Made by a program: the position numbers and the translations under genes | NCBI GenBank assembly: GCA_029953675.1 | Contig: JAMWBK010000009.1 | Span: forward strand, 186,001-250,000 | DNA length: 64,000 nucleotides | Source: Rhodosorus marinus CCMP1338 | Lineage: Eukaryota; Plantae; Rhodophyta | Reading direction: 5' to 3' | Part shown: one piece after another, positions 4,075 through 51,066 of the stretch | Numbering within the stretch: position 1 is the stretch's first letter | Layout: each line of letters starts with the position of its first letter | The notes under the pieces: model-generated | Database searches by the model: none | The model's input: the letters and a program-made list of their open reading frames with translations, nothing else | What the model was told of the DNA's origin: nothing

Positions 4075-6991
4075 TCGAAATGAAGCCACAAGATCCAGGC
4101 TTACAGGGGATCACAATCATGGAAGCTGAGGAAGAAGTAGGGGAGAAGCACACCGACGAAGGGAATACGGGGTGCGATGATGCCCTCAGAAAGGAGTTCC
4201 CGGATGTGTTCAAGGAGAAGTTGCCGGTGTCGCCGAAGGAACGGGAGAAATACGCGCTCCACATCACCTTAGAAGCCGGGGCACGAGCTCCAGCACAAAG
4301 AGCATACCCGATGTCCTTAGTCGATCGTGAACAGCTACAGAAGGAGTTAAAGGATCTGGAACAGCAGGGCGCCGCGCCTGCGCTGTACGTCGAAAAGAAA
4401 GACGGAGGGGCGACGCCTGTGCGTAGACTACCGCCCGCTGAACAACATCACAGTCAGGGAAAGGACGACTCCGCCAAGAGTCGAGGAGCTCATAGACACG
4501 TTGAGTAACGCTCGGGTGTTCACAACGTTAGATCTCCGGTCCGGCTACTGGCAACTTCCTATTGAGCCAACATCACGGGAAAAGACTGCGTTCACGACGT
4601 GCTTTGGACAGTACCAGTTTCCACTCATGACATTCCTGTCATGCCGTTTGGGTTGAAGAATGCGCCCTCGGTGTTAATTCGCTACCTGACGGATGTGTTG
4701 TATGACCTTATCAACGAATGCCCGGTGTTGTACGTCGACGATATCCTGATTTACTCGGCGACTCAGGAGGACCACGAGAAGGATGTCCAACGGGTACTAC
4801 GACGACTAAAGCAACATCAACTACTCGTCCAAAATTCGAAGTGCCAGTTGGGAGCACGTCAAGTGTGCTACGTAGGTCAAATCTTGGCGGGAGGCACTCG
4901 TCGTCCCGACCCAAAGAAGGTGGAGGCCATTCAGGGTTGAAAGGCCCCAACCACTGTCAAGGAAGTACGGGCGTTCATGGGCTTCGCAAATTTTCTACGG
5001 CCGTTTGTTCCTCGCTTTGCGCAAGTAGCTGCACCACTTCACGCACTAAGGAAGAAGGATCAGCAGTGGAACATGGCAACAGGAGGAGCAGCACGCCTTC
5101 GACGACCTCAAACGGTCCATATCGACCACCACCACTCTGCACGTGGTCGACCCGACGCTCCCTTTCATTGTTCAAGTGGATGCAAGTGACGCGGGTGTCG
5201 GTCTGTTCTCCTTCAAACGCGGCAAGACCAGGAGGTGCCAGCGGCGTTTATGTCGCGAGCATTCAACACAACGGAAAAGCGATACAGCACCTACGAGAAA
5301 GAATTGTGTGCCATCGTACTGGCAGTACGACAATGGTCAATATACCTCGATGGGCAACATTTTATCGTGCGTACGGACCATATCCCGGTGCGTTTCCTCC
5401 AAACGCAAACGACTTTGACTCGACGGCAAGCAAGATATGTTAACTTGCTATTGCCGTATTCCTTCGAGATTGAATACATAGGAGGGAAAATCAACGTAGC
5501 GGGCGCACGGAGCCGGGCGCCTTACGAGCCATACGCGTTACCCCGAGTACGGATTGGAATGTGGATTACCTGGCCGACCCTGAGTTCAGTACGCAATTCC
5601 AGAGGCCTGGCCAGCTTGAAGGTTTTCAACGAAAAAAAGTGCCTACTCTTCCTACATGCGAGGCTCTGTGTACCCGACAACCGCGTCAACGAAGTCATCG
5701 ATACGCACCATACATCAGTAACAGCAGGACATTTTGGGGCACAAGCAACGTATCGCCTGATACGCCAACGTTACTACTGGCCGAACATGCGGAAGGACGT
5801 ACTAAAACGCGTACAACAATGCGAGGTATGCGCACGTGAACAACCACTGCGACGAAACCAGAGCGAGCTGCAACCCTGCCCATACCGGAAAAACCGCGCG
5901 GTCGCTTGGGCATGGATTTTGAGACCGGATTTCCGAATGTCGCGGGACATGATACGATTCTGGTTGTGGTGGACCGACTCACGAAGTTCGCCGTATTCGT
6001 TCCAACGACGAAGACAGTGACCGCAGAAGAGGTGGCAACGCTTATTGCGAAGTATATTGTAGCGTTGTTCGGACTACCCCGGAGCTTCGTAGCAGATCGT
6101 GATAAGGTCTTCACAGCGACCTTTGGGCGACACCTTCTGCGATTGAAGGGGGTTCAACAGCTGCTCTCTACCGCGTACCACCCCGAAACGGATGGACAGA
6201 CGGAACGGGTGAATCAGACCCCACAAATTATGCCGAGATGCTGTTGTACCAGTCAAACATGGATGCAGTGTCTACCCCTACTTCAGCTGGCCTACAACAA
6301 CCGTACTTCGGCCAGTACGGGATATTCACCGTAATTTCTGTTAACCGGAGGGCATCCGCGTTTGAACTTGGGCGTCTCAACCCCAACCCCGGCGACTACT
6401 AATCTTGCCGTCGCGGCGACTGCTTTCGTGAAACGACAACAACAAATTCTTGCAGACGCACGCAAGTCCATAGCCCTGGCGCAGGAGTTATATACTGACC
6501 ACGCGAATTCACGGCGTCACACGAAGGTGTTCAACATTGGTGACAAGGTCTATTTGTCCAAGCGCAACCTCGCTTTGGAAGGCCCGATGCGGTTTCGACC
6601 TCTCTGGTTAGGCCCCTTTCCAATCATCGAAAAACATTCGGACGTCGCGTACACGCTACAGGTACCTGATGAAATGCGGGTACATTTCATGTTTCCTTAC
6701 TGAAGAGCGCACCGCCTGGGACAACTGAAACCCAACATATTCCTGTCCGAACCAATCTACGCCTAACGCAACCTGTGCTATCGGTATTGAGCGTGCGTAC
6801 TGACGATGAAGCACCCGCCAGTTTCTATGCTACCGCGAAAATGGATCGTGGACGGATGCTATTTGGCTCCCTGAATATGACTATCCTACGGATACGCTGT
6901 CTCGAGAACGCATCCGTCTACCTCAACTACCGAAAAATGCTCGATGCTTTTCAACTTCTTGAGTTTGTGCCCAAACTCTGCGCGAGGAATG

Positions 6992-38900: not shown

Positions 38901-39556
38901 CGAATCTTTTTTCAAGAATTTGCCAATATAGGCAGTACTGCAGACAGAGGGAGGACTCTTGCCGGGCTATCTGTCTGCTAGCTAGGGTTCTTCGCTATAT
39001 TGTTTTTGAAATAAAATTCACAGGAATCAATAGAGATGTGTCGGTTAGGATATTTTCGTCTGTTCAATTTTGTTCCATTCGTGGAGGAGATTTGTTGGAG
39101 AAAATTATGGTTACTGGTTCTCAATTGGATATTAATATATATCCTCTAGATAAATAAATATCAATATTGTGCTTATCGCCTCTCCTGAATGTTTTGGTTC
39201 AGAAATTTTTTTGCGGTCTGGGGCGTAGCATTGGAAAAGGTGCGGGGTAGGAACAGAGGGTATCTTCCTGTAATCATTTTTTGAAGTAGAAAATACTATG
39301 GGGGGTTTGTAGTGAGGATAAGAAAGACATGAACTGGTTAAGAGAATCCAGGAAAGGGACGGAATACTTCCCTTGCATTAGTGGCGAATGGGCTGTGCAG
39401 CTGACTGATCTGATCTTAACATAGGAAACGGGTTTTTTATATTTTAGTAACTATTATCACTTCCCATTTTTCGTATAGTACAAAAACATATCAATGCCAA
39501 AAACTTGGAATGGAGAACAAGCAACGTCTTGTCATATTCCGGATCAACCACTATTC

Positions 39557-40561
39557 TTACACGGCTGTGAGCTGTACCGTATCGTTCTTCTGGGATGGAA
39601 CGATTTGCGCTTGCTCAACCCTATTATACAAGCTGGATGACAATCCGTTCAGAGAGTTGTTCCTCAGCACGTAGCGATTCAACGCATGAGCTACACCAGC
39701 CTCGTCGTTCGTTTTCGTTACGTCCTTGGCAACGTTCTTCAAGCATGGCATAGCATTCCCCATCGCTACTCCGTACTTTGCCATTTCCATCATCTCCAGG
39801 TCGTTTTCAGCGTCTCCAAGAGCTAGGAGGTTGTCAAATTTCCCTCCAAAGCTGTCCAGGAACATTTCCACCCCAGCACCCTTTGACCCCTGTCCGGGCA
39901 AGATTTCGATCATGTCGGGAATCGCCTGGGTCACCTTCGCTTCACCCTCCATCAATATGTCGATCTCTCCACGGTACTTCTTGCACTCTTCCACTGGTGC
40001 AAGGAACATGAACTTGTGCAGTGGAACCTTTCCGATCACGTTCTCCCATTTTCCGATAGGTTCCGGGTGTGGTTCCTTGTAAGGGCGAAGTTTCTCCGTC
40101 TCTGCGTCAAACTTCTCGCACAGGATTCGGTCCTCGTTGTACGCAACAAGCGTCATCCCAAGCTCGCGCGCCTTGTTCACAATCTTCCAGCTCGTGCTCT
40201 CCGGCACCGTCTTCTCGTATACAATCTCTCCCTTCAGCCCATACACAATCAGGCCGTTAAGGAATACTCCGGGCACCTGGCCACCGTAGGCCTTGCGCAG
40301 GTGCTCCTCAATCGTAGGGCCTACACTGTTCAGCACGCCCTGTCGGGACTTGCCACTAGCACAGACAAACTTGACACCACCCGCAAGCGTATCGATGATC
40401 GCCTCCTCCACTCTCGGGTCAACGCTGTGCTTGCTATTCAGCAGCGTCCCATCAACATCACATGTGACGTACTTCACATTGGGTCTTTGTTGCGGTACGC
40501 TCCTGACTTTCTTCACGATCACTCTCGAGTCGATTGTTGTCCTCCTCACCTTCACAGCCAT
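39557..40561 (-). CDS. Cof-type HAD-IIB phosphatase, copy 1, intronless
   Basis: DVDGTLLN (motif I), ASGK (II), SKGAG (III), GDAEND (IV), AMGNA. Confidence 0.92.
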   Translation of the reverse strand: MAVKVRRTTIDSRVIVKKVRSVPQQRPNVKYVTCDVDGTLLNSKHSVDPRVEEAIIDTLAGGVKFVCASGKSRQGVLNSVGPTIEEHLRKAYGGQVPGVFLNGLIVYGLKGEIVYEKTVPESTSWKIVNKARELGMTLVAYNEDRILCEKFDAETEKLRPYKEPHPEPIGKWENVIGKVPLHKFMFLAPVEECKKYRGEIDILMEGEAKVTQAIPDMIEILPGQGSKGAGVEMFLDSFGGKFDNLLALGDAENDLEMMEMAKYGVAMGNAMPCLKNVAKDVTKTNDEAGVAHALNRYVLRNNSLNGLSSSLYNRVEQAQIVPSQKNDTVQLTAV

Positions 40562-40731
40562 TTCGAATTTGTAATTGTATTTTTAGAAGCAATCGTGCGT
40601 CCTTATAAGTTTATAACAAGATCAAGTATCTCTTCACAGGTTCGTGTCCTTCTGGTTGTTCACCTTCCTCGCCTGCCGCTTACTTGCCCTTCCAAGATTG
40701 CGTCTCCGCGGCATTTCACCCCCCACTTACG

Positions 40732-40740
40732 TATTTATAC
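40732..40740 (-). promoter_or_regulatory. TATA-like GTATAAATA upstream of HAD copy 1
   Basis: Identical 9-mer lies 110-175 bp upstream of all three HAD ATGs although the flanks do not align. Confidence 0.5.
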
Positions 40741-41064
40741 CCTTGCGAAGTGATCTGTGTATCTGTTCAGCTCGCCCCCTATCCCCCCCCTCAAAATGTG
40801 ATTCTGCAGAAAGCACCAAATGGATTCATAATAAAAATTTTCAATTTTTTCCCTCCCATTTATTGATTTGAACTAATTTCAGAGAGGACTGCAGACCACA
40901 TCATTTATTCAAAAATATATGAAAATTAACGAGTTCCAGGACTAGCGTTGGATATGATAGCATGAATTTCAAGAGATTTGTTCTGGCCACATGGTGTTTC
41001 TTGGCCAAGCAATTACTTTCAAACTACGGTACTACGAAAACTCTATATTTTAATGACTTGTTCT

Positions 41065-41468
41065 GGCCATACATGGCCGGACTCCTTTTTTCGTTTTTCG
41101 TGCTCAGAGGAATATGAAAAGAAAAGCATTTCAGGCCATTACATAGAAACCATTGGCAAAATTTCCATCTTTGTGCAAGTCCACCTATAGAAATATGCAT
41201 TATTTTATACGGCCAGAGCTGGACAGTAAATAAATACTTTATTTTAAATATATATTTCAATATATATTTAAAAATATTATATTATAGAAATAATATCTTG
41301 GCCATATCTGGCCACTATAAATCTATTACAATATTCGTCCAAATACACAATATAATAGAAAAATAATCGACTCCTTTGCACTTTGCTGATCAGTCCAGGA
41401 ACTTTCGAATGCGAGGCGGATGAAACTTATGTTGATAAAGAGAAGAAATTACCTGGCCAATGCTGGCC
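41065..41468. promoter_or_regulatory. Cluster of palindromic GGCCA-N4-TGGCC sites (41065, 41300, 41455; one-mismatch copy at 41211)
   Basis: Read directly from sequence, in AT-rich DNA 500-900 bp upstream of HAD copy 1. Function is inferred. Confidence 0.55.
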
Positions 41469-44400
41469 GCAGAATATTATCGCCAGTTAATTCGATCGTA
41501 TATTTAATAGTAGAACTTTTCCGTTGGGCACTTTTGGCCAAAAAAATTCAAATGGTTTTCTAGACGAAATGATAGTCTACGTTTGAAATATCTAGTCATT
41601 CTGATCTAGCCTCTTAAATATTCTTTGAAATATGTCCTGAACTCTCGGGCAACAAGGTAATACATATATATTTAGCCACTATCGACTTCAGTTTTACGAC
41701 ACGTGAGTATTCTGGACTTGATGTTGGTCCTTATTGACGGAAAGAGATACAAAGAAACGGTTAACGTCTTCCCTGATATAGAAGAAAAATGTCAGGGGGT
41801 GAAACGCATGGCTATTGCATCTGAAAAATTTCTGCGACTGGCAAACTATCCTGGGGGTGTTTACTTGAATATTCTAGAGCCTTTTCTTACGAAGAACAAT
41901 ATTCCGATTTCGGCGCGCGATTCTCTGTGGGGCCAGGCTGAAAGTTCTGCGTTTTGAAAAGTTCTAAGCCGTTAGGAGGGGTTCAGCAACGGTCTAAACT
42001 GATTTCGGAGACATAGCAAATAGTAAGGAACTGCTTGGTCTATACCCCCCCAATTTTGACTGAGGGAAACTGATGAGAATTTAAATAGATGTTTTTGCGT
42101 TATTTATTTCATAGGTTGTTAGATTTTGAGCGGGAAACTCTGGAGGGGTGGGATAATTATGGTACTGACGCAAGGATTGTCCCGCTGGGAAGGGTGGTTG
42201 CTGGGGGTTTCGTCCACAATAAATTTCTCTCCGATATTTGTAGAAGGCTTCTGTACGGACAGCGATTGTTCGTGCTTTGTTGATATGAGAGAAGAGCGTT
42301 TTCCCGCTGCAGGGTCACACCACAAAAAAAATAGCTGGACAGATATTTCGTCAACAGATTTGCTTTTAAAGAAAAAACTGCACCGGAATTACATCAGTGC
42401 TTTCTATGGGTGGCGGTGGTTGCAACATATGGATTGGAAAATCAAAATCCACGTCTTCGGGAAGGCCCGCCCGAATTTCTTTGGAGCCGGTCCCCCCCAG
42501 ACTCGCCATGACATTTTGATCAGCCGCTTTTTCGTTCCCTCCAAAGTTTCGGATTGCGCTCTGTTCGAGAGGCAGCTTTCAATTTTGATTGGGACAATCT
42601 TTTTTCCGAAATTTTCTGAGGCAGGGAAGCTTCGATTTGGATATTCTATTGACCATTCTCGAAAATGCTCAGCTCCGCTGAGCGAATTTAAATATGTATA
42701 TTACCTCTTTATTTTACTTTTATTCCAGATCAGCAGAAGCACATACGTGGGGTATGACATCGAAAACAATTATTCCAACAAGACACCATCTCCCAACTCC
42801 TTGATAGGTCGGATTGCTAAGCGAAAGTACCTCATATATTTGGAAAAAGAAGTTAATTGGTGCTATTCTTTGCAAGAAGGCTAGGGGTAGAAGAAACAAA
42901 AACAATTACTAAATTGCAATAAAAATGAATTCATGTGTTGTTAAATAATTCTACTCCTGCCTTTCGCTAAAAATCTACAATCGTTTTCCCAGAACTTTAA
43001 AACAAAAGATGGCGGGGGCAAGTGCTATCGGGACTAAAGTGCGCGGTTACCATGCCAGGATCTTTTTTTAGTCAACTGTTACTTGGATGGGTAGGTCATT
43101 AGGAGATGAGATACTTTGATGCCTAGATTGGCAACGTGAAACTCCGATTCAAATATTGTGGAATAAAAAACTGCATCGGTTAGTTTGAGAAGATCTTCGC
43201 TCTCAGGAGAGGGAGTCCTTGAAGAGGCTCCTAAGGGTTATTTGAGCGTATGGGCGATGCCCATTTTCATGGGGGGGTGATGGAGTGTGGGAATATCTGG
43301 TCGAAGGTAGTTTTTGATCGAGTAAGTGGTAATTCAGAATGTCCTGAAATTTGGGGCGCGTCCCACAGAGCTCTTTCCTAAAAGGGTTATACAGAATTCT
43401 CGCTCACAATGTTGGGAAGAACGCCCTAGTTCCGTCTGGCGCTACCCTTTCCTCGCTTACAGGGGTTCCGTAACCCCATCCGATTTGATATCTGAAGAAG
43501 ATCTAGAATCTCGGCTTGTCAGACGGGCAGGGAAGATGGCGGCAAAGCAGAGTTGGAAGGCATGGTACACCTCCGCCTGCTTCAGAGCTAGGAGATCCGA
43601 AGCTCGTTGACTAGCTTGAGCGGTACCGCCTCCCTCGAGCGGATTCGTGCTGACCCCGAACGGTTTCCCGCTGCATTTGAGAACACAGGGATTGACGAGG
43701 AACACCAAGCTACACTACCCAAGTTCGCTAGATCAGAAGCTCTTGATGTGCTCTACAGGGAATCTCAGCACGGGCCTTCTGCTCAAAGTGCACAAGGCGT
43801 CCTTGTAGTTCGGAGGAGTCATGGTAAAGAGCTCTTGCAGATGTGACAGACCCAGACTCTGGCCTCCGAGAAAATCAGGATTCTCCGTAGCCTAGCGCAT
43901 AGTTAAGAGACCTCTGTAACTGTCTGCAAGAGCAACAGTTTAGATATTCCAATCAGATCAGATTCCACGAAAGTACAGCCGTCACGAGCCTGACATGAGC
44001 TGTGAGAGCTCAGCATCAACACCATTCTGCCAGCAGCTCATCTTCTATTGAGAGGCAACAGCTCTACCCAGCGTTGAATAGAGTGCTCCTTTTTTTTCAA
44101 GGGGTAGTTCAAAAAAAGATGTCCTCATGGGGTGGCTACGAAAGCGCCTTTCAGGAAAAGATCGTTCAGAAAACGATGGAGGAAAAGCACTCCTACATAT
44201 TTTGTCGGGAACATGTTTCCCCCCGGGGCACGAGTATCATCGTAATCAGAATCGTTTTGGTTCCCAACGGGCTTCGGCTTGCACGGCTGTTCCGAGTGGT
44301 TTTGATTGGGATAAATTTTTTTCCTAAACTTCTGAGGCCGGGATGGGCTACATGGGATATTATATTCGTTTCTCTTGAAATCGTGCCGCAGTCAAGTGCT

Positions 44401-44769
44401 CTTTCAAACGGTTTATTTACCCCTTTATTTTTCCACTATTCAGTACTCAACCGCTCATTCCCTGGGGTATGTGTCTCCTCCACAATTGAGTTCGAAAAGG
44501 AAACGAAGTCAAAGGCTCTCTGTCCCCAGCAGTTTCCATACATTCCTTTCTAAATATTTCGTGAAACGAATAAACCAGAATGGATCGATCACAGATATCC
44601 AGGGGTTAAAGGATATTGATTATACTCTGTTTGAGTAAAACAAATTTGGACCATCCACAAGTTAGTTTTCCTAAATAATCTCAAGCTCTATATTCTTGAT
44701 GTCACATAGTTAGTAAAAAGCTTCAAAAAATTGCCTCCCATTTATCTTAAAAAACAAAACAATTATTGG

Positions 44770-44783
44770 GGCCAGCTTTGGCC
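44770..44783. promoter_or_regulatory. Palindromic GGCCA-N4-TGGCC site upstream of HAD copy 2
   Basis: GGCCAGCTTTGGCC, about 390 bp upstream of ATG 45175. Confidence 0.5.
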
Positions 44784-45037
44784 TCAAAAACAAAACTTTC
44801 GAAAAACAAAAAGGTTTTTTCTTGAAGAAATTTCTGGGCCAAAAAAGAAGCAGCCCATGCGCCTCTAATTTTTTTTTGAAAACGGTTCATCGCCTGTGAT
44901 TTTGTGCACCCCTCATAAAATTACTCACAATCAAATAATTGAACCATGAAGATTGGAAAATATTATTCCGAATCCATTTGTGCTTCCTTTTTGGTGCAGG
45001 TCACATTGGGAGATGGATAGATATCACGTCTAGAAGG

Positions 45038-45046
45038 GTATAAATA
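45038..45046 (+). promoter_or_regulatory. TATA-like GTATAAATA upstream of HAD copy 2
   Basis: Same 9-mer as at copies 1 and 3. Confidence 0.5.
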
Positions 45047-45174
45047 GGTAGGGTTTGCTGGGATCCCCCTGTGGGTTAGCGGATTGTGCAGAGAAAGGGT
45101 AGAGGACTCATAGCCCCAAGACCTAGACTGTTAGCAGTGACTTGATCTTCTCGGATACAATCAAATACATCGAA

Positions 45175-46179
45175 ATGGCGGTCAAGGTGAAGAGGACAAC
45201 AATCGACTCGAGACTGATCGTGAAGAAAGTCAGGAGCGTACCGCAACAAAGACCCAATGTGAAGTACGTCACATGTGATGTTGATGGGACGCTGCTGAAT
45301 AGCAAGCACAGCGTTGACCCGAGAGTGGAGGAGGCGATCATCGATACCCTGGCATGTGGTGTCAAGTTTGTCTGTGCTAGTGGCAAGTCCCGACAGGGCG
45401 TGCTGAACAGTGTAGGCCCTACGATTGAGGAGCACCTGCGCAAGGCCTACGGTGGCCAGGTGCCCGGAGTATTCCTTAACGGCCTGATTGTGTATGGGCT
45501 GAAGGGAGAGATTGTATACGAGAAGACGGTGCCGGAGAGCACGAGCTGGAAGATTGTGAACAAGGCGCGCGAGCTTGGGATGACGCTTGTTGCGTACAAC
45601 GAGGACCGAATCCTGTGCGAGAAGTTTGACGCAGAGACGGAGAAACTTCGCCCGTACAAGGAACCACACCCGGAACCTATCGGAAAATGGGAGAACGTGA
45701 TCGGAAAGGTTCCACTGCACAAGTTCATGTTCCTTGCACCAGTGGAAGAGTGCAAGAAGTACCGTGGAGAGATCGACATATTGATGGAGGGTGAAGCGAA
45801 GGTGACCCAGGCGATTCCCGACATGATCGAAATCTTGCCCGGACAGGGGTCAAAGGGTGCTGGGGTGGAAATGTTCCTGGACAGCTTTGGAGGGAAATTT
45901 GACAACCTCCTAGCTCTTGGAGACGCTGAAAACGACCTGGAGATGATGGAAATGGCAAAGTACGGTGTAGCTATGGGGAATGCTATGCCATGCTTGAAGA
46001 ACGTTGCCAAGGACGTAACGAAAACGAACGACGAGGCTGGTGTAGCTCATGCGTTGAACCGCTACGTGCTGAGGAACAACTCTCTGAACGGATTGTCATC
46101 CAGCTTGTACAATAGGGTTGAGCAAGCGCAAATCGTTCCATCCCAGAAGAACGATAAGGTGCAGCTTGCAACCGTGTAA
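45175..46179 (+). CDS. Cof-type HAD-IIB phosphatase, copy 2, intronless
   Basis: Same motifs as copy 1; near-identical, inverted copy. Confidence 0.92.
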   Translation: MAVKVKRTTIDSRLIVKKVRSVPQQRPNVKYVTCDVDGTLLNSKHSVDPRVEEAIIDTLACGVKFVCASGKSRQGVLNSVGPTIEEHLRKAYGGQVPGVFLNGLIVYGLKGEIVYEKTVPESTSWKIVNKARELGMTLVAYNEDRILCEKFDAETEKLRPYKEPHPEPIGKWENVIGKVPLHKFMFLAPVEECKKYRGEIDILMEGEAKVTQAIPDMIEILPGQGSKGAGVEMFLDSFGGKFDNLLALGDAENDLEMMEMAKYGVAMGNAMPCLKNVAKDVTKTNDEAGVAHALNRYVLRNNSLNGLSSSLYNRVEQAQIVPSQKNDKVQLATV

Positions 46180-48803
46180 GAATACTATTGATGATAAGGG
46201 GCTCCGAAGGAGCCGGATTAGTACCATACTTTGTACAATACTATCGAAGGAATATTATAATAAAAGAACGTTCAAACAAAAACCGATCACCTCTCTACAC
46301 GGTCAAAAACCACAAACCAACCGCAACCCGAATATCCCGAAACCGACAACTCACACGTTGCGCAAAGTATGTCGCTCCCCACCTTCCTCCAACAACTTGC
46401 TTCCCCGCATCCACCACCACTGTTTCTACGAATTGATTGAGGACATGCCCACGACCAACAGCACCTCACCCCCCCTCCTTCCCCCGCCACGCGAGCCTAC
46501 TTCAACCCCTCTAGGGAACTAACTCTTTCAGCAATCAGAACCCTACACGAGCATTGGTCCTAAAACAAAACAAAGGAATCCAAAATAGCATTCAAATTAT
46601 AATCACGTCAATATATGTTTATCCAAACTATTTTTCCATAGAAGGCATTATCCAATGAATTCTAGCCACGAGCAAAAGTATCTGAAAATATCCTAACGGA
46701 CTCATCTAATTCCATTCCCGTTAATTTCTTCATAAATACAAAACTCTTCGGGAAACCCAAGAGGTCTTTTTTTCAAGTCGGATCCGCTGCCAGGGAGAAT
46801 CTCGAAGTCGCGGAAGCGGGCAAGTGGAAAAGACAAAGAAGGGCCAGTTAGAGTTGAGGACCAAGCTGAAGCTTCGCTAAATGGTGTGGAAGGCCATGCA
46901 CGCGGAGAAGTGAGAGAGAGGCGGAGGTGGACACGGATGATGGCGCCAGGTCTTTGGCGGTTTTTGTTGGGTGTCCCTACTGGAGCAGACGGACTATGCC
47001 GGAAGCGGGAGGACCTGCCGAAATTGGGATACCAGCAACCGGCTGAAAGCAAGTGGAGAGCTTCAGTCCTATCTGTCAACAAGAAACGCCAGAGGTGGAT
47101 GTAGTCGTAACCTCTACTAAGCAGCTGCCCCAGTTTCAGCACCTTCAGTATTCTGTCCACCTCCTTCCTCACCAGCGGCAACGAGCTTGGTTGAGAAAGG
47201 CATCTAGAATCGGAGCAACAGGGCACGGACGCGGCCTTAACCATCTGGTAGAGTCGGCGGTGCCTGTCCAGCCACTGTTGATGAGACCTGTCGCGAGATG
47301 GGCAGGGTAGGAAAATTGCGGCAGTGGTAGGTGCTGGGTAGTTGCTGACCGACTTCCGGAGTAGCTAAGAAAACTGGTTCCGAGCTCACGTGAGAACGGA
47401 GACTCTGGGTTCCGAGTTTGGGCCCTGCTGAGCTCAGCTGACCCCGGGTCCAACGCCGAGCCCAAATTCAGATAGTCTCCACCTGCTGATCTGCTGCGTA
47501 TCACCCCGATTTATTAGCTGGCGGCGGCGGGGGGACTTCTCCGTTCAGAAGAATTGTGCCCATCCTCCGACAAAACTCATTTAGTACCATCGTTCGGAAA
47601 TCCCCTTAGGTTATTTTTTTATGTGGTGCTAACCACTGTGTTGGTAGCTAGATAGAGGGACGACTCAGTTATGGCAGTGTTGGTTTCATGCCCTGAAGAG
47701 CAAGGACAAAGTTTAATCTATGAGCGAGGCTACTCAGGCCGATAAGGAAGCTAAGATAGTGACTCCCCCTAATAGGTAATTCAAAGCCTGGAGCTGGTCT
47801 GTGCACCGTTTTCTCCTATTCAGCGCTACAAGCTTTTCTCAATGTCAAAAATTCCAACCGCAGGAAGCATCAACTCTTGCTTTGAAACTCGCTCAATCGT
47901 GTTTCAGACCAAAACAGTCCGCGCTTGTGAGTTCCGGATCAGACTCTACACACTCCTTGGTGCGCTCCTTTCCCATCATCTCGGAGCGCTTGAAAAATAG
48001 CCTCTACCCTACTACACAGCAAGCAAGGAGGTTTTGCTCTCTTTCACAATCCTGGCCCTCATCAGTAGCCGCGGTCCCAGCTATTTGCGCAGCATACTGC
48101 CCTTTACTATGATGAACCCGCCGCTTTTGGGCGGTGGCCATCGGTATACGGTCAGTTTTCCCGAAAGGCTTACTGCACGAAGGAAGCCGACCACAACAAC
48201 TCTCCACCAGTACTGGATACTCAATTCCTGTTCCGAACCAGGGAAAAATAGAATTGTTTGTGCAAGGCAAACTGGAGTCGTAGCTGGCAGGTCGCGATCG
48301 GGCGAGGATGCTAGCTACGTAGACTAAAGACGAACAGGAAAGGCGGTTGAACGCTTGAACGAGCACATTGCATTTCTCTGCCAGAGTGTCACGATCGCCA
48401 TCCAACGAAGCAAACCAGTGTAACGCCGTAACGCCAACCAGCTGTCCCCACTTTTTTACTTTCCGTTTGTTACAGTCCTAAGCCCATCTTAATTTTCTCC
48501 TAGAAATTTAGACGAAGCAGCAAAATCTATTAATTCTTAACCGTTGGATCAATATTTATAAAACCAAACACAATGCAATTTAAAGCAAGGTAGATATTTT
48601 TGAATGGTTTCAAAAATTCAACATACAAATCATGAAAAAAATCCAGTTTTCGCGGCCTCACAGCGCCACTCAAAATCGAGTAAATCCAAAGAAAATTATC
48701 ATATTACTCGATCCGCCTTTCTTGAGCCACCCGCGAAAATGATTTGCCTCGATGCTGAATTTCTCTTTAAATATTTTCACGAGTTTTCTAGAAGATTATT
48801 ATG

Positions 48804-49097
48804 GGCCATGTCTGGCCAACAAACTATTTCATAAAATCACATAGCGAAGCGACGTATGAAAAATATTTCAATATGAAAAATATTTTGTGGCCAGGTTTGA
48901 ACCCGTGAAATTTTGCAGTTTACAATGTTTTAAATATTCCCATTTTCTTCAGACAGTTTTTGATGTCCCGGAGCCGCCTCCCTGGCAGGGGAAGGCTTCC
49001 CTGAGCGCTGAATTTTCCCTAATTCTTAAGTTGATTATGTTTCTGGCCGTTGGGCAACTATAGAATAATGAAAATAAATATATGGCCAATATTGGCC
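48804..49097. promoter_or_regulatory. Two palindromic GGCCA-N4-TGGCC sites (48804, 49084) upstream of HAD copy 3
   Basis: GGCCATGTCTGGCC and GGCCAATATTGGCC in AT-rich DNA. Confidence 0.55.
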
Positions 49098-49385
49098 AGC
49101 GGGAAAGCCTCTAGAGGACAGCATATTTGGATATTGTAATATGAAACAAATTATACGGCCATAGATCGGTTGAACTTGGCCCGGTAAATAATTTTAAAAT
49201 TCATGGGCTATCCTTGATTGCAGTCATGTTTTAAATCAATCCTATTCAACAAATGTTGGAGAAAAAAAGAGAAATTTTATGGTAGAGTCCATTTTGAGAG
49301 CGTTTGAGGCAAGGTAGAGGTGACGATAGACAAGATTCTCTGACTTGGGTATCGCGGAGAAGAGCATCCGCGGACCTCCGCAAGA

Positions 49386-49394
49386 GTATAAATA
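49386..49394 (+). promoter_or_regulatory. TATA-like GTATAAATA upstream of HAD copy 3
   Basis: Same 9-mer as at copies 1 and 2. Confidence 0.5.
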
Positions 49395-49502: not shown

Positions 49503-50513
49503 ATGGCTTTCTACGTGAAGAGGAATACTACGATCGAATCCATTGCGGTTCACTCGAAGAAGGTTAGGAGTATACCAAGTCATAGACCGCATGTGCAGTA
49601 CGTCACATGCGATGTTGATGGGACGCTGCTGAATAGCAAGCATAACGTTGACCCAAGAGTCGAGGAGGCGATTATCGAGACGCTGGCATGTGGTGTCAAG
49701 TTTGTCTGTGCTAGTGGCAAGTCCCGACAGGGCGTGCTGAACAGTGTAGGCCCTACGATTGAGGAGCACCTGCGCAAGGCCTACGGTGGCCAGGTGCCCG
49801 GAGTATTCCTGAACGGCCTGATTGTGTATGGGCTGAAGGGAGAGATTGTATACGAGAAGACGGTGCCGGAGAGCACGAGCTGGAAGATTGTGAACAAGGC
49901 GCGCGAGCTTGGGATGACGCTTGTTGCGTACAACGAGGACCGAATCCTGTGCGAGAAGTTTGACGCAGAGACGGAGAAACTTCGCCCGTACAAGGAACCA
50001 CACCCGGAACCTATCGGAAAATGGGAGAACGTGATCGGAAAGGTTCCACTGCACAAGTTCATGTTCCTTGCACCAGTGGAAGAGTGCAAGAAGTACCGTG
50101 GAGAGATCGACATATTGATGGAGGGTGAAGCGAAGGTGACCCAGGCGATTCCCGACATGATCGAAATCTTGCCCGGACAGGGGTCAAAGGGTGCTGGGGT
50201 GGAAATGTTCCTGGACAGCTTTGGAGGGAAATTTGACAACCTCCTAGCTCTTGGAGACGCTGAAAACGACCTGGAGATGATGGAAATGGCAAAGTACGGA
50301 GTAGCGATGGGGAATGCTATGCCATGCTTGAAGAACGTTGCCAAGGACGTAACGAAAACGAACGACGAGGCTGGTGTAGCTCATGCGTTGAACCGCTACG
50401 TGCTGAGGAACAACTCTCTGAACGGATTGTCATCCAGCTTGTATAACAGAGTAGAGCTGCCACAAATGGTTCCCTCCAAGAAGAACGAGACGATACAACT
50501 CAAAATCATGTAA
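49503..50513 (+). CDS. Cof-type HAD-IIB phosphatase, copy 3, intronless, with divergent termini
   Basis: Core nearly identical to copies 1 and 2; N-terminus MAFYVKRNTT and C-terminal tail diverged. Confidence 0.92.
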   Translation: MAFYVKRNTTIESIAVHSKKVRSIPSHRPHVQYVTCDVDGTLLNSKHNVDPRVEEAIIETLACGVKFVCASGKSRQGVLNSVGPTIEEHLRKAYGGQVPGVFLNGLIVYGLKGEIVYEKTVPESTSWKIVNKARELGMTLVAYNEDRILCEKFDAETEKLRPYKEPHPEPIGKWENVIGKVPLHKFMFLAPVEECKKYRGEIDILMEGEAKVTQAIPDMIEILPGQGSKGAGVEMFLDSFGGKFDNLLALGDAENDLEMMEMAKYGVAMGNAMPCLKNVAKDVTKTNDEAGVAHALNRYVLRNNSLNGLSSSLYNRVELPQMVPSKKNETIQLKIM

Positions 50514-51066
50514 CAACACTAATTATTTTGCTCGTTAAGAGGACTTCTCCTCTCACACCAGGACAAGAACGTGTGCGTATTTCCGCGGCGAAGCAAACCA
50601 TGTTTTGTACAAAATAATTGATCTGGACATTTTATTCCCAACCTATTCTCCCTTCAACGGAGAGAATAATAATATTAAAACGAAACACTACTTTTCCACA
50701 TCAGCAACAAGTACCTGTTCTTCAAACTATCTACAACTGCCTGACGGCAGTTCATGTTAAGAGCGGATTGCATGATATGGTTTGCTACTAGTTGACTTGG
50801 TCGAATAGTCTCTTCCTTACCCAACATAACGCGCACCAGGGAAATGCCAAATTCCCCGAACTCCCGACATTCAGACATCAATTTCCAATACCCTCAAAAG
50901 CTACCTTAAAACTTGATAAGCACCATATTGACTTTTATGCGAAATTCATCGTTCAATTGATAATCAGCAATATGCGAAACAGCCAATGAATAACTTCCAC
51001 GAGAAAAATATCTAAAACTATCTTAGCAATCAATATCGACACATTGCTTCCGCTCAAATCACTTTT

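Follow-up and report, generated by a model that had tools for sequence, protein, structure and literature searches.

In eukaryotic promoters, clusters of transcription factor (TF) sites, such as upstream activating or repressing sequences (UAS/URS), hold several strong and weak copies of one motif a few hundred bp upstream of a TATA core promoter, and the motif is kept while its surroundings turn over. We describe a similar arrangement in the red alga Rhodosorus marinus CCMP1338. The whole stretch of DNA analyzed, hereafter the window, comprises 64,000 nt of contig JAMWBK010000009.1 (positions 186,001-250,000; assembly GCA_029953675.1) and is eukaryotic nuclear DNA. It carries a dyad, GGCCA-N4-TGGCC (search pattern GGCCANNNNTGGCC), upstream of three paralogous, phosphatase-like genes for Cof-type HAD-IIB hydrolases, which we call HAD1, HAD2 and HAD3. 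Dyads and lone half-sites form a cluster in front of each gene, and we consider these clusters probable binding sites of a regulatory protein. Such a feature would be of an ordinary kind, a TF-site cluster conserved in paralogous promoters, the principle of which is already known. It differs from the described clusters in that it is known so far from the sequence of three paralogous promoters in a single red alga. The nuclear genome of this strain, a member of the Stylonematophyceae, spans 31 Mb and has 8,392 genes (PMC10250338). The HAD1 protein is encoded on JAMWBK010000009.1 without a single difference.

Several other described sites share parts of this geometry. The CArG box, CC(A/T)6GG, is bound by MADS dimers (SRF, MCM1 and plant MIKC proteins), and MADS genes occur in red algae. 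The dyad holds CCA-N4-TGG, with the 10-bp CC...GG frame of CCAWWWWTGG, and the copy at 49084 (CCAATATTGG) is a perfect CArG box. However, it is the only one of the six copies that fits CC(A/T)6GG; in the central six bases, two dyads have one non-A/T base and three dyads have two. The A/T fraction of the dyad spacer is 0.67, compared with 0.65 for the region. In addition, the outer G/C of GGCC is conserved in the dyad and lone GGCCA is enriched, neither of which a CArG box requires. Lacking the A/T-rich center, the dyad was rejected as a CArG/MADS site.

The nuclear factor I (NFI) site, TTGGC-N5-GCCAA, has dyad symmetry as well; its half-sites are TGGC/GCCA-like, and the spacer between them is fixed in length but free in sequence. 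In the R. marinus dyad the half-sites stand in the opposite order (GGCCA...TGGCC) and at another spacing, on which grounds we rejected it as an NFI site; NFI is a metazoan family. The paired palindromes of CP2/LSF (CNRG-N6-CNRG) and p53 repeat at 10 bp center to center on one helix face, where a dimer of dimers suits, and the dyad written as a direct repeat gives NTGG-N6-NTGG. CNRG is matched by only some of the dyads, and the likeness, to families of opisthokonts or metazoans, is one of geometry only. The C2H2 zinc fingers BCL11A and BCL11B bind TG(N)CC(C/T/A), including TGGCCA, in clusters of short motifs (PMC12978192, PMC13225276). They are vertebrate proteins that nothing connects with red algae, and they lack the strict 10-bp pairing. 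Searching a literature library with five spellings, we found no paper with the dyad written out, and TGGCCA appeared as a binding word for vertebrate BCL11A/B only.

Performing an exact search of the 64 kb, we find six perfect dyads and no more, exactly as a first-pass annotation of this DNA had listed them: at 41065, 41300, 41455, 44770, 48804 and 49084. The chance expectation was taken from dinucleotide-preserving shuffles of the window (n = 100), which held a mean of 0.03 dyads; none of the 100 reached six. The presence of the dyad in the upstream DNA of HAD1-3 is real and far beyond chance. The rarity claimed initially stands as over-representation, but its calculation assumes that the six copies are independent, an assumption that probably does not hold (see below). 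When one mismatch was allowed, 13 matches were returned against 1.6 expected, including the copy at 41211 that had already been reported and a further one at 41526. Three of the 13 fall on one shared coding position of HAD1-3 (40279-40292, 45444-45457 and 49778-49791; GGCCTACGGTGGCC, encoding ..AYGGQ..); lying at a paralogous position in all three genes, they are probably incidental. The matches at 854 and 37897 are isolated.

Each half-site lies within the palindromic hexamer TGGCCA, and the dyad amounts to two such hexamers 10 bp apart from center to center, that is, one helical turn. Because the hexamer is itself a palindrome, the dyad may be read equally as a direct or an inverted pair, and its initial description as an inverted dyad is just one of two equivalent ones. 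The fixed 10-bp interval, on the other hand, proved to be strict. Neighboring GGCC words stand exactly 10 bp apart six times compared with 0.29 expected, and not one of 200,000 random placements reached six. Over the whole window GGCC is slightly under-represented (164 vs ~207 expected); 22 copies fall in the three site-bearing stretches, which agrees with the richness in lone half-sites remarked on earlier. In the three distal promoters (2.1 kb, 35% GC), GGCCA is the top enriched 5-mer (33 vs ~3 expected), and TGGCCA (11 vs ~0.5 expected) and CTGGCC are the top enriched 6-mers. The window holds 25 TGGCCA hexamers, with 7 in 40984-41540 and 4 in 48813-49098.

We also checked the placement of the sites relative to the genes. 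The dyads lie 395-904 bp upstream of a HAD ATG, matching the 390-900 bp first proposed, and the range widens to 325-975 bp when half-sites are counted. The GGCC cores stand 424, 442, 504/514, 573, 650, 739/749, 894/904 and 975 bp upstream of the ATG in HAD1, 338, 395/405 and 839 bp in HAD2, and 325, 346, 409/419, 458, 614, 689/699 and 849 bp in HAD3. Thus, each gene has a cluster of 3 to 11 cores over ~70-550 bp, located ~150 to 800 bp upstream of the TATA box. All sites are upstream of the conserved GTATAAATA box, itself at -113 to -181 from the ATG, and dyad A is ~260-330 bp from the TATA box in all three genes (Table 1).

Table 1. Window coordinates of the three HAD genes, their TATA boxes and the TGGCCA-type sites upstream of them.
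Feature	Position	Strand	Basis or remark
HAD1, Cof-type HAD-IIB hydrolase, 334 aa, single exon	39557..40561	-	Pfam Hydrolase_3 E=7.7e-49; gene in GCA_029953675.1 annotation
TATA box GGGTATAAATA of HAD1, 181 bp upstream of ATG	40732..40742	-	conserved across the three promoters and the second Rhodosorus lineage
Two lone TGGCCA hexamers, 18 bp apart (HAD1)	40984-40989, 41002-41007		sequence search
Dyad A of HAD1, TGGCCATACATGGCCG	41064..41079		exact match; MAFFT-aligned with 49084
Lone half-site GGCCA (HAD1)	41134..41138		sequence search
Decayed dyad D of HAD1, GGCCAGAGCTGGAC, 1 mismatch	41211..41224		MAFFT-aligned with the more decayed 48889
Dyad B of HAD1, TGGCCATATCTGGCCA	41299..41314		exact match; aligned with 48804
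Dyad C of HAD1, TGGCCAATGCTGGCCG	41454..41469		exact match; no counterpart upstream of HAD2 or HAD3
Near-dyad GGGCACTTTTGGCC(A), 1 mismatch, farthest-upstream HAD1 site	41526..41540		one-mismatch search; upstream of HAD1 only
Dyad A of HAD2, GGGCCAGCTTTGGCCT	44769..44784		exact match; 395-405 bp upstream of ATG
Lone half-site GGCCA, then A-run (HAD2)	44837..44841		sequence search
TATA box GTATAAATA of HAD2	45038..45046	+	promoter alignment
HAD2, Cof-type HAD-IIB hydrolase, 334 aa, intron-less	45175..46179	+	Pfam Hydrolase_3 E=1.6e-48
Dyad B of HAD3, GGGCCATGTCTGGCCA	48803..48818		exact match; aligned with 41300
Decayed dyad D of HAD3, TGGCCAGGTTTGAACC, left hexamer kept, right half gone, three-mismatch relic	48888..48903		alignment with 41211
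Lone half-site TGGCC (HAD3)	49044..49048		sequence search
Dyad A of HAD3, TGGCCAATATTGGCCA, perfect 16-bp palindrome	49083..49098		exact match
Two lone half-sites (HAD3): GGCCA at 49157, TGGCC at 49177	49157..49181		sequence search
TATA box GTATAAATA of HAD3	49386..49394	+	promoter alignment
HAD3, Cof-type HAD-IIB hydrolase, 336 aa, intron-less	49503..50513	+	Pfam Hydrolase_3 E=9.9e-49

Besides the window, we examined 21 kb round a distant HAD paralog, which brings the DNA surveyed to ~85 kb of the 31 Mb (~0.3%). This fourth Cof-type HAD of R. marinus (KAJ8909211, contig 1) is 58% identical and was the sole other one among the returns of the homolog search. The dyad is absent from its 21 kb, where TGGCCA occurs at background level only. 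Hence the dyad is not a common word, with 0 copies in ~85 kb outside the HAD1-3 promoters.

The three promoters turned out to be related to one another. The TATA-proximal 300-400 bp are homologous among HAD1-3, with z = 11-12.6 for the HAD1 upstream region against those of HAD2 and HAD3, and z = 3.5 for HAD2 against HAD3. This corrects the initial description of the upstream DNA as non-alignable, which does hold for the distal flanks, where divergence is near saturation: after masking of the sites, the distal alignment of the HAD1 and HAD3 upstream regions exceeded shuffles only marginally (z = 2.5, 7/200). Blocks common to the proximal promoters include GTATAAATA and (GAA)TCCATTT. The GTATAAATA TATA occurs in all three and the longer GGGTATAAATA in HAD1 and HAD2; GAATCCATTT is present in HAD1 and HAD2 (40818-40827, 44970-44979), TCCATTT in all three (HAD3 49288-49294) and TGCAGTC in HAD1 and HAD3. 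We regard these shared blocks as candidates for further regulatory elements.

MAFFT aligned 41065 with 49084 (dyad A), 41300 with 48804 (dyad B) and 41211 with 48889 (dyad D). The copy at 44770 was not aligned by MAFFT, and we placed it in dyad A by its like distance from the TATA box. The sites are collinear among the promoters, and dyad B is common to two of them. As the promoters of HAD1-3 are old homologous paralogs with sites in like order, the six dyads are probably not independent and fall into about three positional groups. The term regulon, applied to them at first, was therefore premature: the three genes are paralogs whose promoters come from one ancestor, so that shared sites may be shared by descent.

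Whether or not the copies are independent, the way in which they have changed leads to one inference. The dyad cores are identical at 10/10 bases in all copies, compared with 3/16 pairwise identities in the spacers, and the flanks are unalignable. The earlier proposal that the sites were kept while the promoters diverged agrees with this result. Neutral decay would not leave identical cores beside diverged spacers and flanks, so the cores are apparently selected, a pattern expected of a protein-binding site. In their over-representation, in their position upstream of a core promoter, and in the greater conservation of motif bases than of neighboring bases among the paralogous promoters, the sites behave as a TF-site cluster does.

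The coding sequences (CDSs) of the same genes show a different history. HAD2 is 98% identical to HAD1 up to ~5 bp beyond the CDS, and HAD3 is 95-96% identical to both within the CDS only. Across the three genes, the 95-98% identity stops ~5-20 bp from the start and stop codons (39552-40566, 45170-46184, 49556-50516). For comparison outside this strain we used a 1.5-kb Logan contig (L015) from run SRR32518362, which holds a HAD1 ortholog (486-1490) and 485 bp upstream of it. Because its third codon positions differ at 24% (80/335), the source of this run is a distinct Rhodosorus lineage. The three CCMP1338 CDSs differ from one another at 18-31 positions but from the second lineage at 84-92 (89-92 over the last 900 bp), while divergence between the paralogous promoters far exceeds that of the orthologous promoter pair. 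These two facts together point to gene conversion restricted to the HAD coding sequences. The L015 protein ends in ..IQLKIM as HAD3 does and has the N-terminus and promoter of HAD1, which suggests mosaic conversion.

The sites might also be non-functional, either inherited from one ancestral promoter and still undecayed or copied between promoters by short conversion tracts. The decay of dyad D would fit such a history, as would the converted CDSs. However, the conversion tracts stop ~5-20 bp from the CDSs, and spacers with 3/16 identities mean that the dyads were not copied as blocks. With the flanks near saturation, the chance retention of 10/10 bases in five copies is negligible. We consider this explanation extremely unlikely.

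Comparison of the HAD1 promoter between the two lineages (CCMP1338 40562-41040, L015 1-485) gave a broader picture of constraint. Upstream of the TATA box, a gap-free stretch of 298 bp shows 87% identity, compared with 57% in the 5′ untranslated region and 76% at third codon positions. By this comparison the entire upstream promoter is constrained between lineages, not the TGGCCA sites alone. The hexamers at 40984 and 41002 are unaltered, in a block with 1 difference in ~57 aligned bases; as the whole 298 bp is also kept, this is a weak test of hexamer conservation. The check on orthologous promoters that the first-pass annotation had called for reached two hexamers and stopped ~25 bp short of a full dyad. 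Searching SRR32518362 for further contigs with concatenated six-frame ORF (open reading frame) pieces of at least 24 aa from the three upstream regions gave no match at E <= 0.01. JGI metagenomes had no match to the conserved 25-mer TTGGCCAAGAAACACCATGTGGCCA or to the HAD2 protein. The nearest genomic homologs outside Rhodosorus (proteins 47-48% identical, on contigs of 68-70% GC) lack the motif, and their distance makes them uninformative; the HAD homologs of Bangiopsis and Purpureofilum are available as transcripts only.

A dyad may also be kept for the structure that it forms, whether a cruciform in the DNA or a hairpin in the RNA of an unannotated upstream transcript, with stems of 5-9 bp and a 4-nt loop. 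Each of the six dyads does form such a stem-loop (-5.1 to -7.8 kcal/mol for DNA; z = -1.9 to -4.5 vs shuffles), and a loop of fixed length and free sequence is what a hairpin would need. The stem extends into the flanks of two copies through different bases, reaching 8 bp at 41065 and 9 bp at 44770. Yet the stem sequence is invariant without compensatory changes, the near-copies at 41211 and 41526 break the pairing, and lone half-sites, which are unable to pair, are enriched as well. Arms of five bp are short for cruciform extrusion. Scans of the regions with Rfam (E <= 1) and for tRNAs were both empty. By these comparisons the dyads keep sequence, not structure, and a structural role seems very unlikely to us.

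The sites might instead serve an architectural or chromatin factor, marking a boundary, an insulator, a positioned nucleosome or a replication origin between the HAD genes. Distances of ~70-90 bp and 145-156 bp recur from site to site, and the regions are long AT-rich intergenic tracts in a compact genome (31 Mb, 8,392 genes; PMC10250338). A general factor of this sort should have sites in other intergenic DNA, but the motif is missing from the other intergenic regions of the window and from the 21 kb of KAJ8909211. Its placement is always 5′ of a HAD gene, with dyad A at a like distance from each TATA box. Thus, an architectural role appears unlikely. A tandem array or minisatellite, also as the source of the ~70-90 bp spacing, was rejected, as Tandem Repeats Finder reports only period-10 two-copy dyads (41293-41314, 49077-49098) and AT-rich simple repeats.

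We then asked whether the regions are relics of a mobile element, an alternative that the first-pass annotation had itself put forward. An old non-autonomous DNA transposon, or a short dispersed repeat, would then have inserted in front of the ancestral HAD gene or in front of every copy, and the dyads would be its subterminal, transposase-binding repeats. Subterminal arrays of hAT or CACTA elements consist of several short motif copies in both orientations, and DNA transposons and miniature inverted-repeat transposable elements (MITEs) resemble our regions in packing many such copies into a few hundred AT-rich bp. A 33-nt same-strand similarity of 76% (41186-41218 and 49132-49164, ending TATACGGCCA) has borderline significance; since its orientation is opposite with respect to the two genes, it is not accounted for by simple promoter homology. 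Against such an origin, no terminal inverted repeats bound the three regions, where only short AT-rich or motif-derived inverted matches were seen. Similarity of the site flanks is at control level (best non-overlapping score 13 vs 11-13). BLAST of the region against the whole window found no other copies, and there were none in the 21 kb of contig 1. In the DNA examined, the HAD-upstream regions differ from transposons and MITEs in having no terminal inverted repeats, target-site duplications, alignable family or extra copies, and we rejected the regions as a MITE for want of terminal inverted repeats and of an alignable family. A non-functional remnant, moreover, would not hold 10/10 core bases while its spacers randomize. 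We therefore think a mobile-element relic improbable. A Helitron-type 3′ hairpin was rejected too, since by eye no consistent CTRR follows the dyads.

The R. marinus genome is reported to have abundant nuclear copies of mitochondrial DNA (NUMTs), and the non-coding regions of its mitochondrial minicircles are also of raised GC (PMC10250338). On composition, we consider a NUMT origin of the upstream regions unlikely, these having 35% GC compared with the raised GC of the minicircle non-coding DNA; no alignment was made.

Weighing these alternatives, we return to the protein-binding reading, according to which the TGGCCA/dyad cluster is predicted to be a set of binding sites for a sequence-specific protein and an upstream regulatory module of the three HAD paralogs. 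We put its probability at about 60%. Protein binding, a dimeric or tetrameric state and an effect on transcription are what we infer from features that the DNA displays directly, namely the sites, their enrichment, their exact spacing, their restriction to the HAD1-3 promoters and the retention of cores beside diverged spacers and flanks. In the mechanism that we propose, an R. marinus DNA-binding protein would recognize the TGGCCA hexamers, chiefly the pairs spaced by 10 bp. Hexamers one helical turn apart would offer equivalent contacts on one helix face, and this arrangement would suit a dimer that spans two half-sites or two dimers that bind cooperatively. The lone hexamers may act as weaker, auxiliary sites of low affinity. 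The whole cluster may then activate or repress from upstream and place the three HAD paralogs under common control. A role as an upstream module is suggested by the position of the cluster relative to a conserved TATA box, which lies downstream of it and ~260-330 bp from dyad A in all three genes.

Several points weigh against this reading. To our knowledge, which includes the literature search, there is no described factor with such a dyad site. The motif survey covers just ~85 kb of the 31-Mb genome, and within it the fourth HAD paralog (KAJ8909211) has no motif in 21 kb. The lineage comparison reaches two hexamers and no full dyad, as L015 ends ~25 bp before dyad A. The case for homology among the distal sites comes mostly from the motifs, in their order and spacing: the z of 2.5 under masking compares with z = 4.9 still obtained in the reverse-complement control, the motif being palindromic. 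Constraint is not uniform either, given that dyad D, an ancestral one, is decayed in the HAD1 and HAD3 promoters alike, the two in which it occurs. Finally, the shared sites could be wholly due to descent within one gene family.

A wider role is conceivable. The dyad may be the operator of a lineage-specific red-algal factor, a dimer or dimer of dimers, with a genome-wide regulon in which the HAD genes would be the most densely targeted; we regard this as tentative and unlikely. A nutrient or stress program is one possibility for such a regulon, in view of a gene of the glycerophosphodiester phosphodiesterase (GDPD) family in the window. In plants and yeast, GDPD genes belong to the phosphate-starvation response, and the presence of one is of interest beside a cluster of phosphatase genes.

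The GDPD gene extends over two ORFs (719-1819 and 1830-2510; region 719-2510) and is presumably split between them by a short intron or a frame change. The N-terminal part of its GDPD-domain ORF has three TGGCCA-like hexamers in 10-bp register at 853-878 (TGGGCA-CGCG-TGGCCA-TTGA-GGCCCA), probably a coincidence in coding DNA. The window also contains a Ty3/gypsy fragment and DnaJ, MFS, ketopantoate-reductase-like and ABC-transporter genes. The Ty3/gypsy-type pol fragment, at 4718-6020, has RT RNase H (reverse transcriptase-associated) and integrase zinc-binding domains.

No gene is annotated between HAD1, HAD2 and HAD3 in GCA_029953675.1. The gene-free spacers are 4.6 kb (HAD1-HAD2) and 3.3 kb (HAD2-HAD3), which is long compared with a genome mean of ~3.7 kb per gene. 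The intergenic ORFs at 42126-42884, 44002-44553 and 46702-47244 have no Pfam match, and the first and last of these, when translated, look like chance and were rejected as genes. The HAD1-HAD2 spacer also holds a 45-bp direct repeat of 84% identity (42583-42627 and 44300-44343).

In summary, the locus combines CDSs homogenized by gene conversion with promoters near saturation, in which the site cores and the TATA-proximal blocks survive. Beyond a few model species, almost nothing is known of how red algae control transcription. If the dyad does define a regulon, the Stylonematophyceae would gain their first defined cis-element and regulon. Being short and sharply defined, the dyad offers an experimental handle, both as bait for the factor and as a query for target genes in the R. 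marinus assembly.

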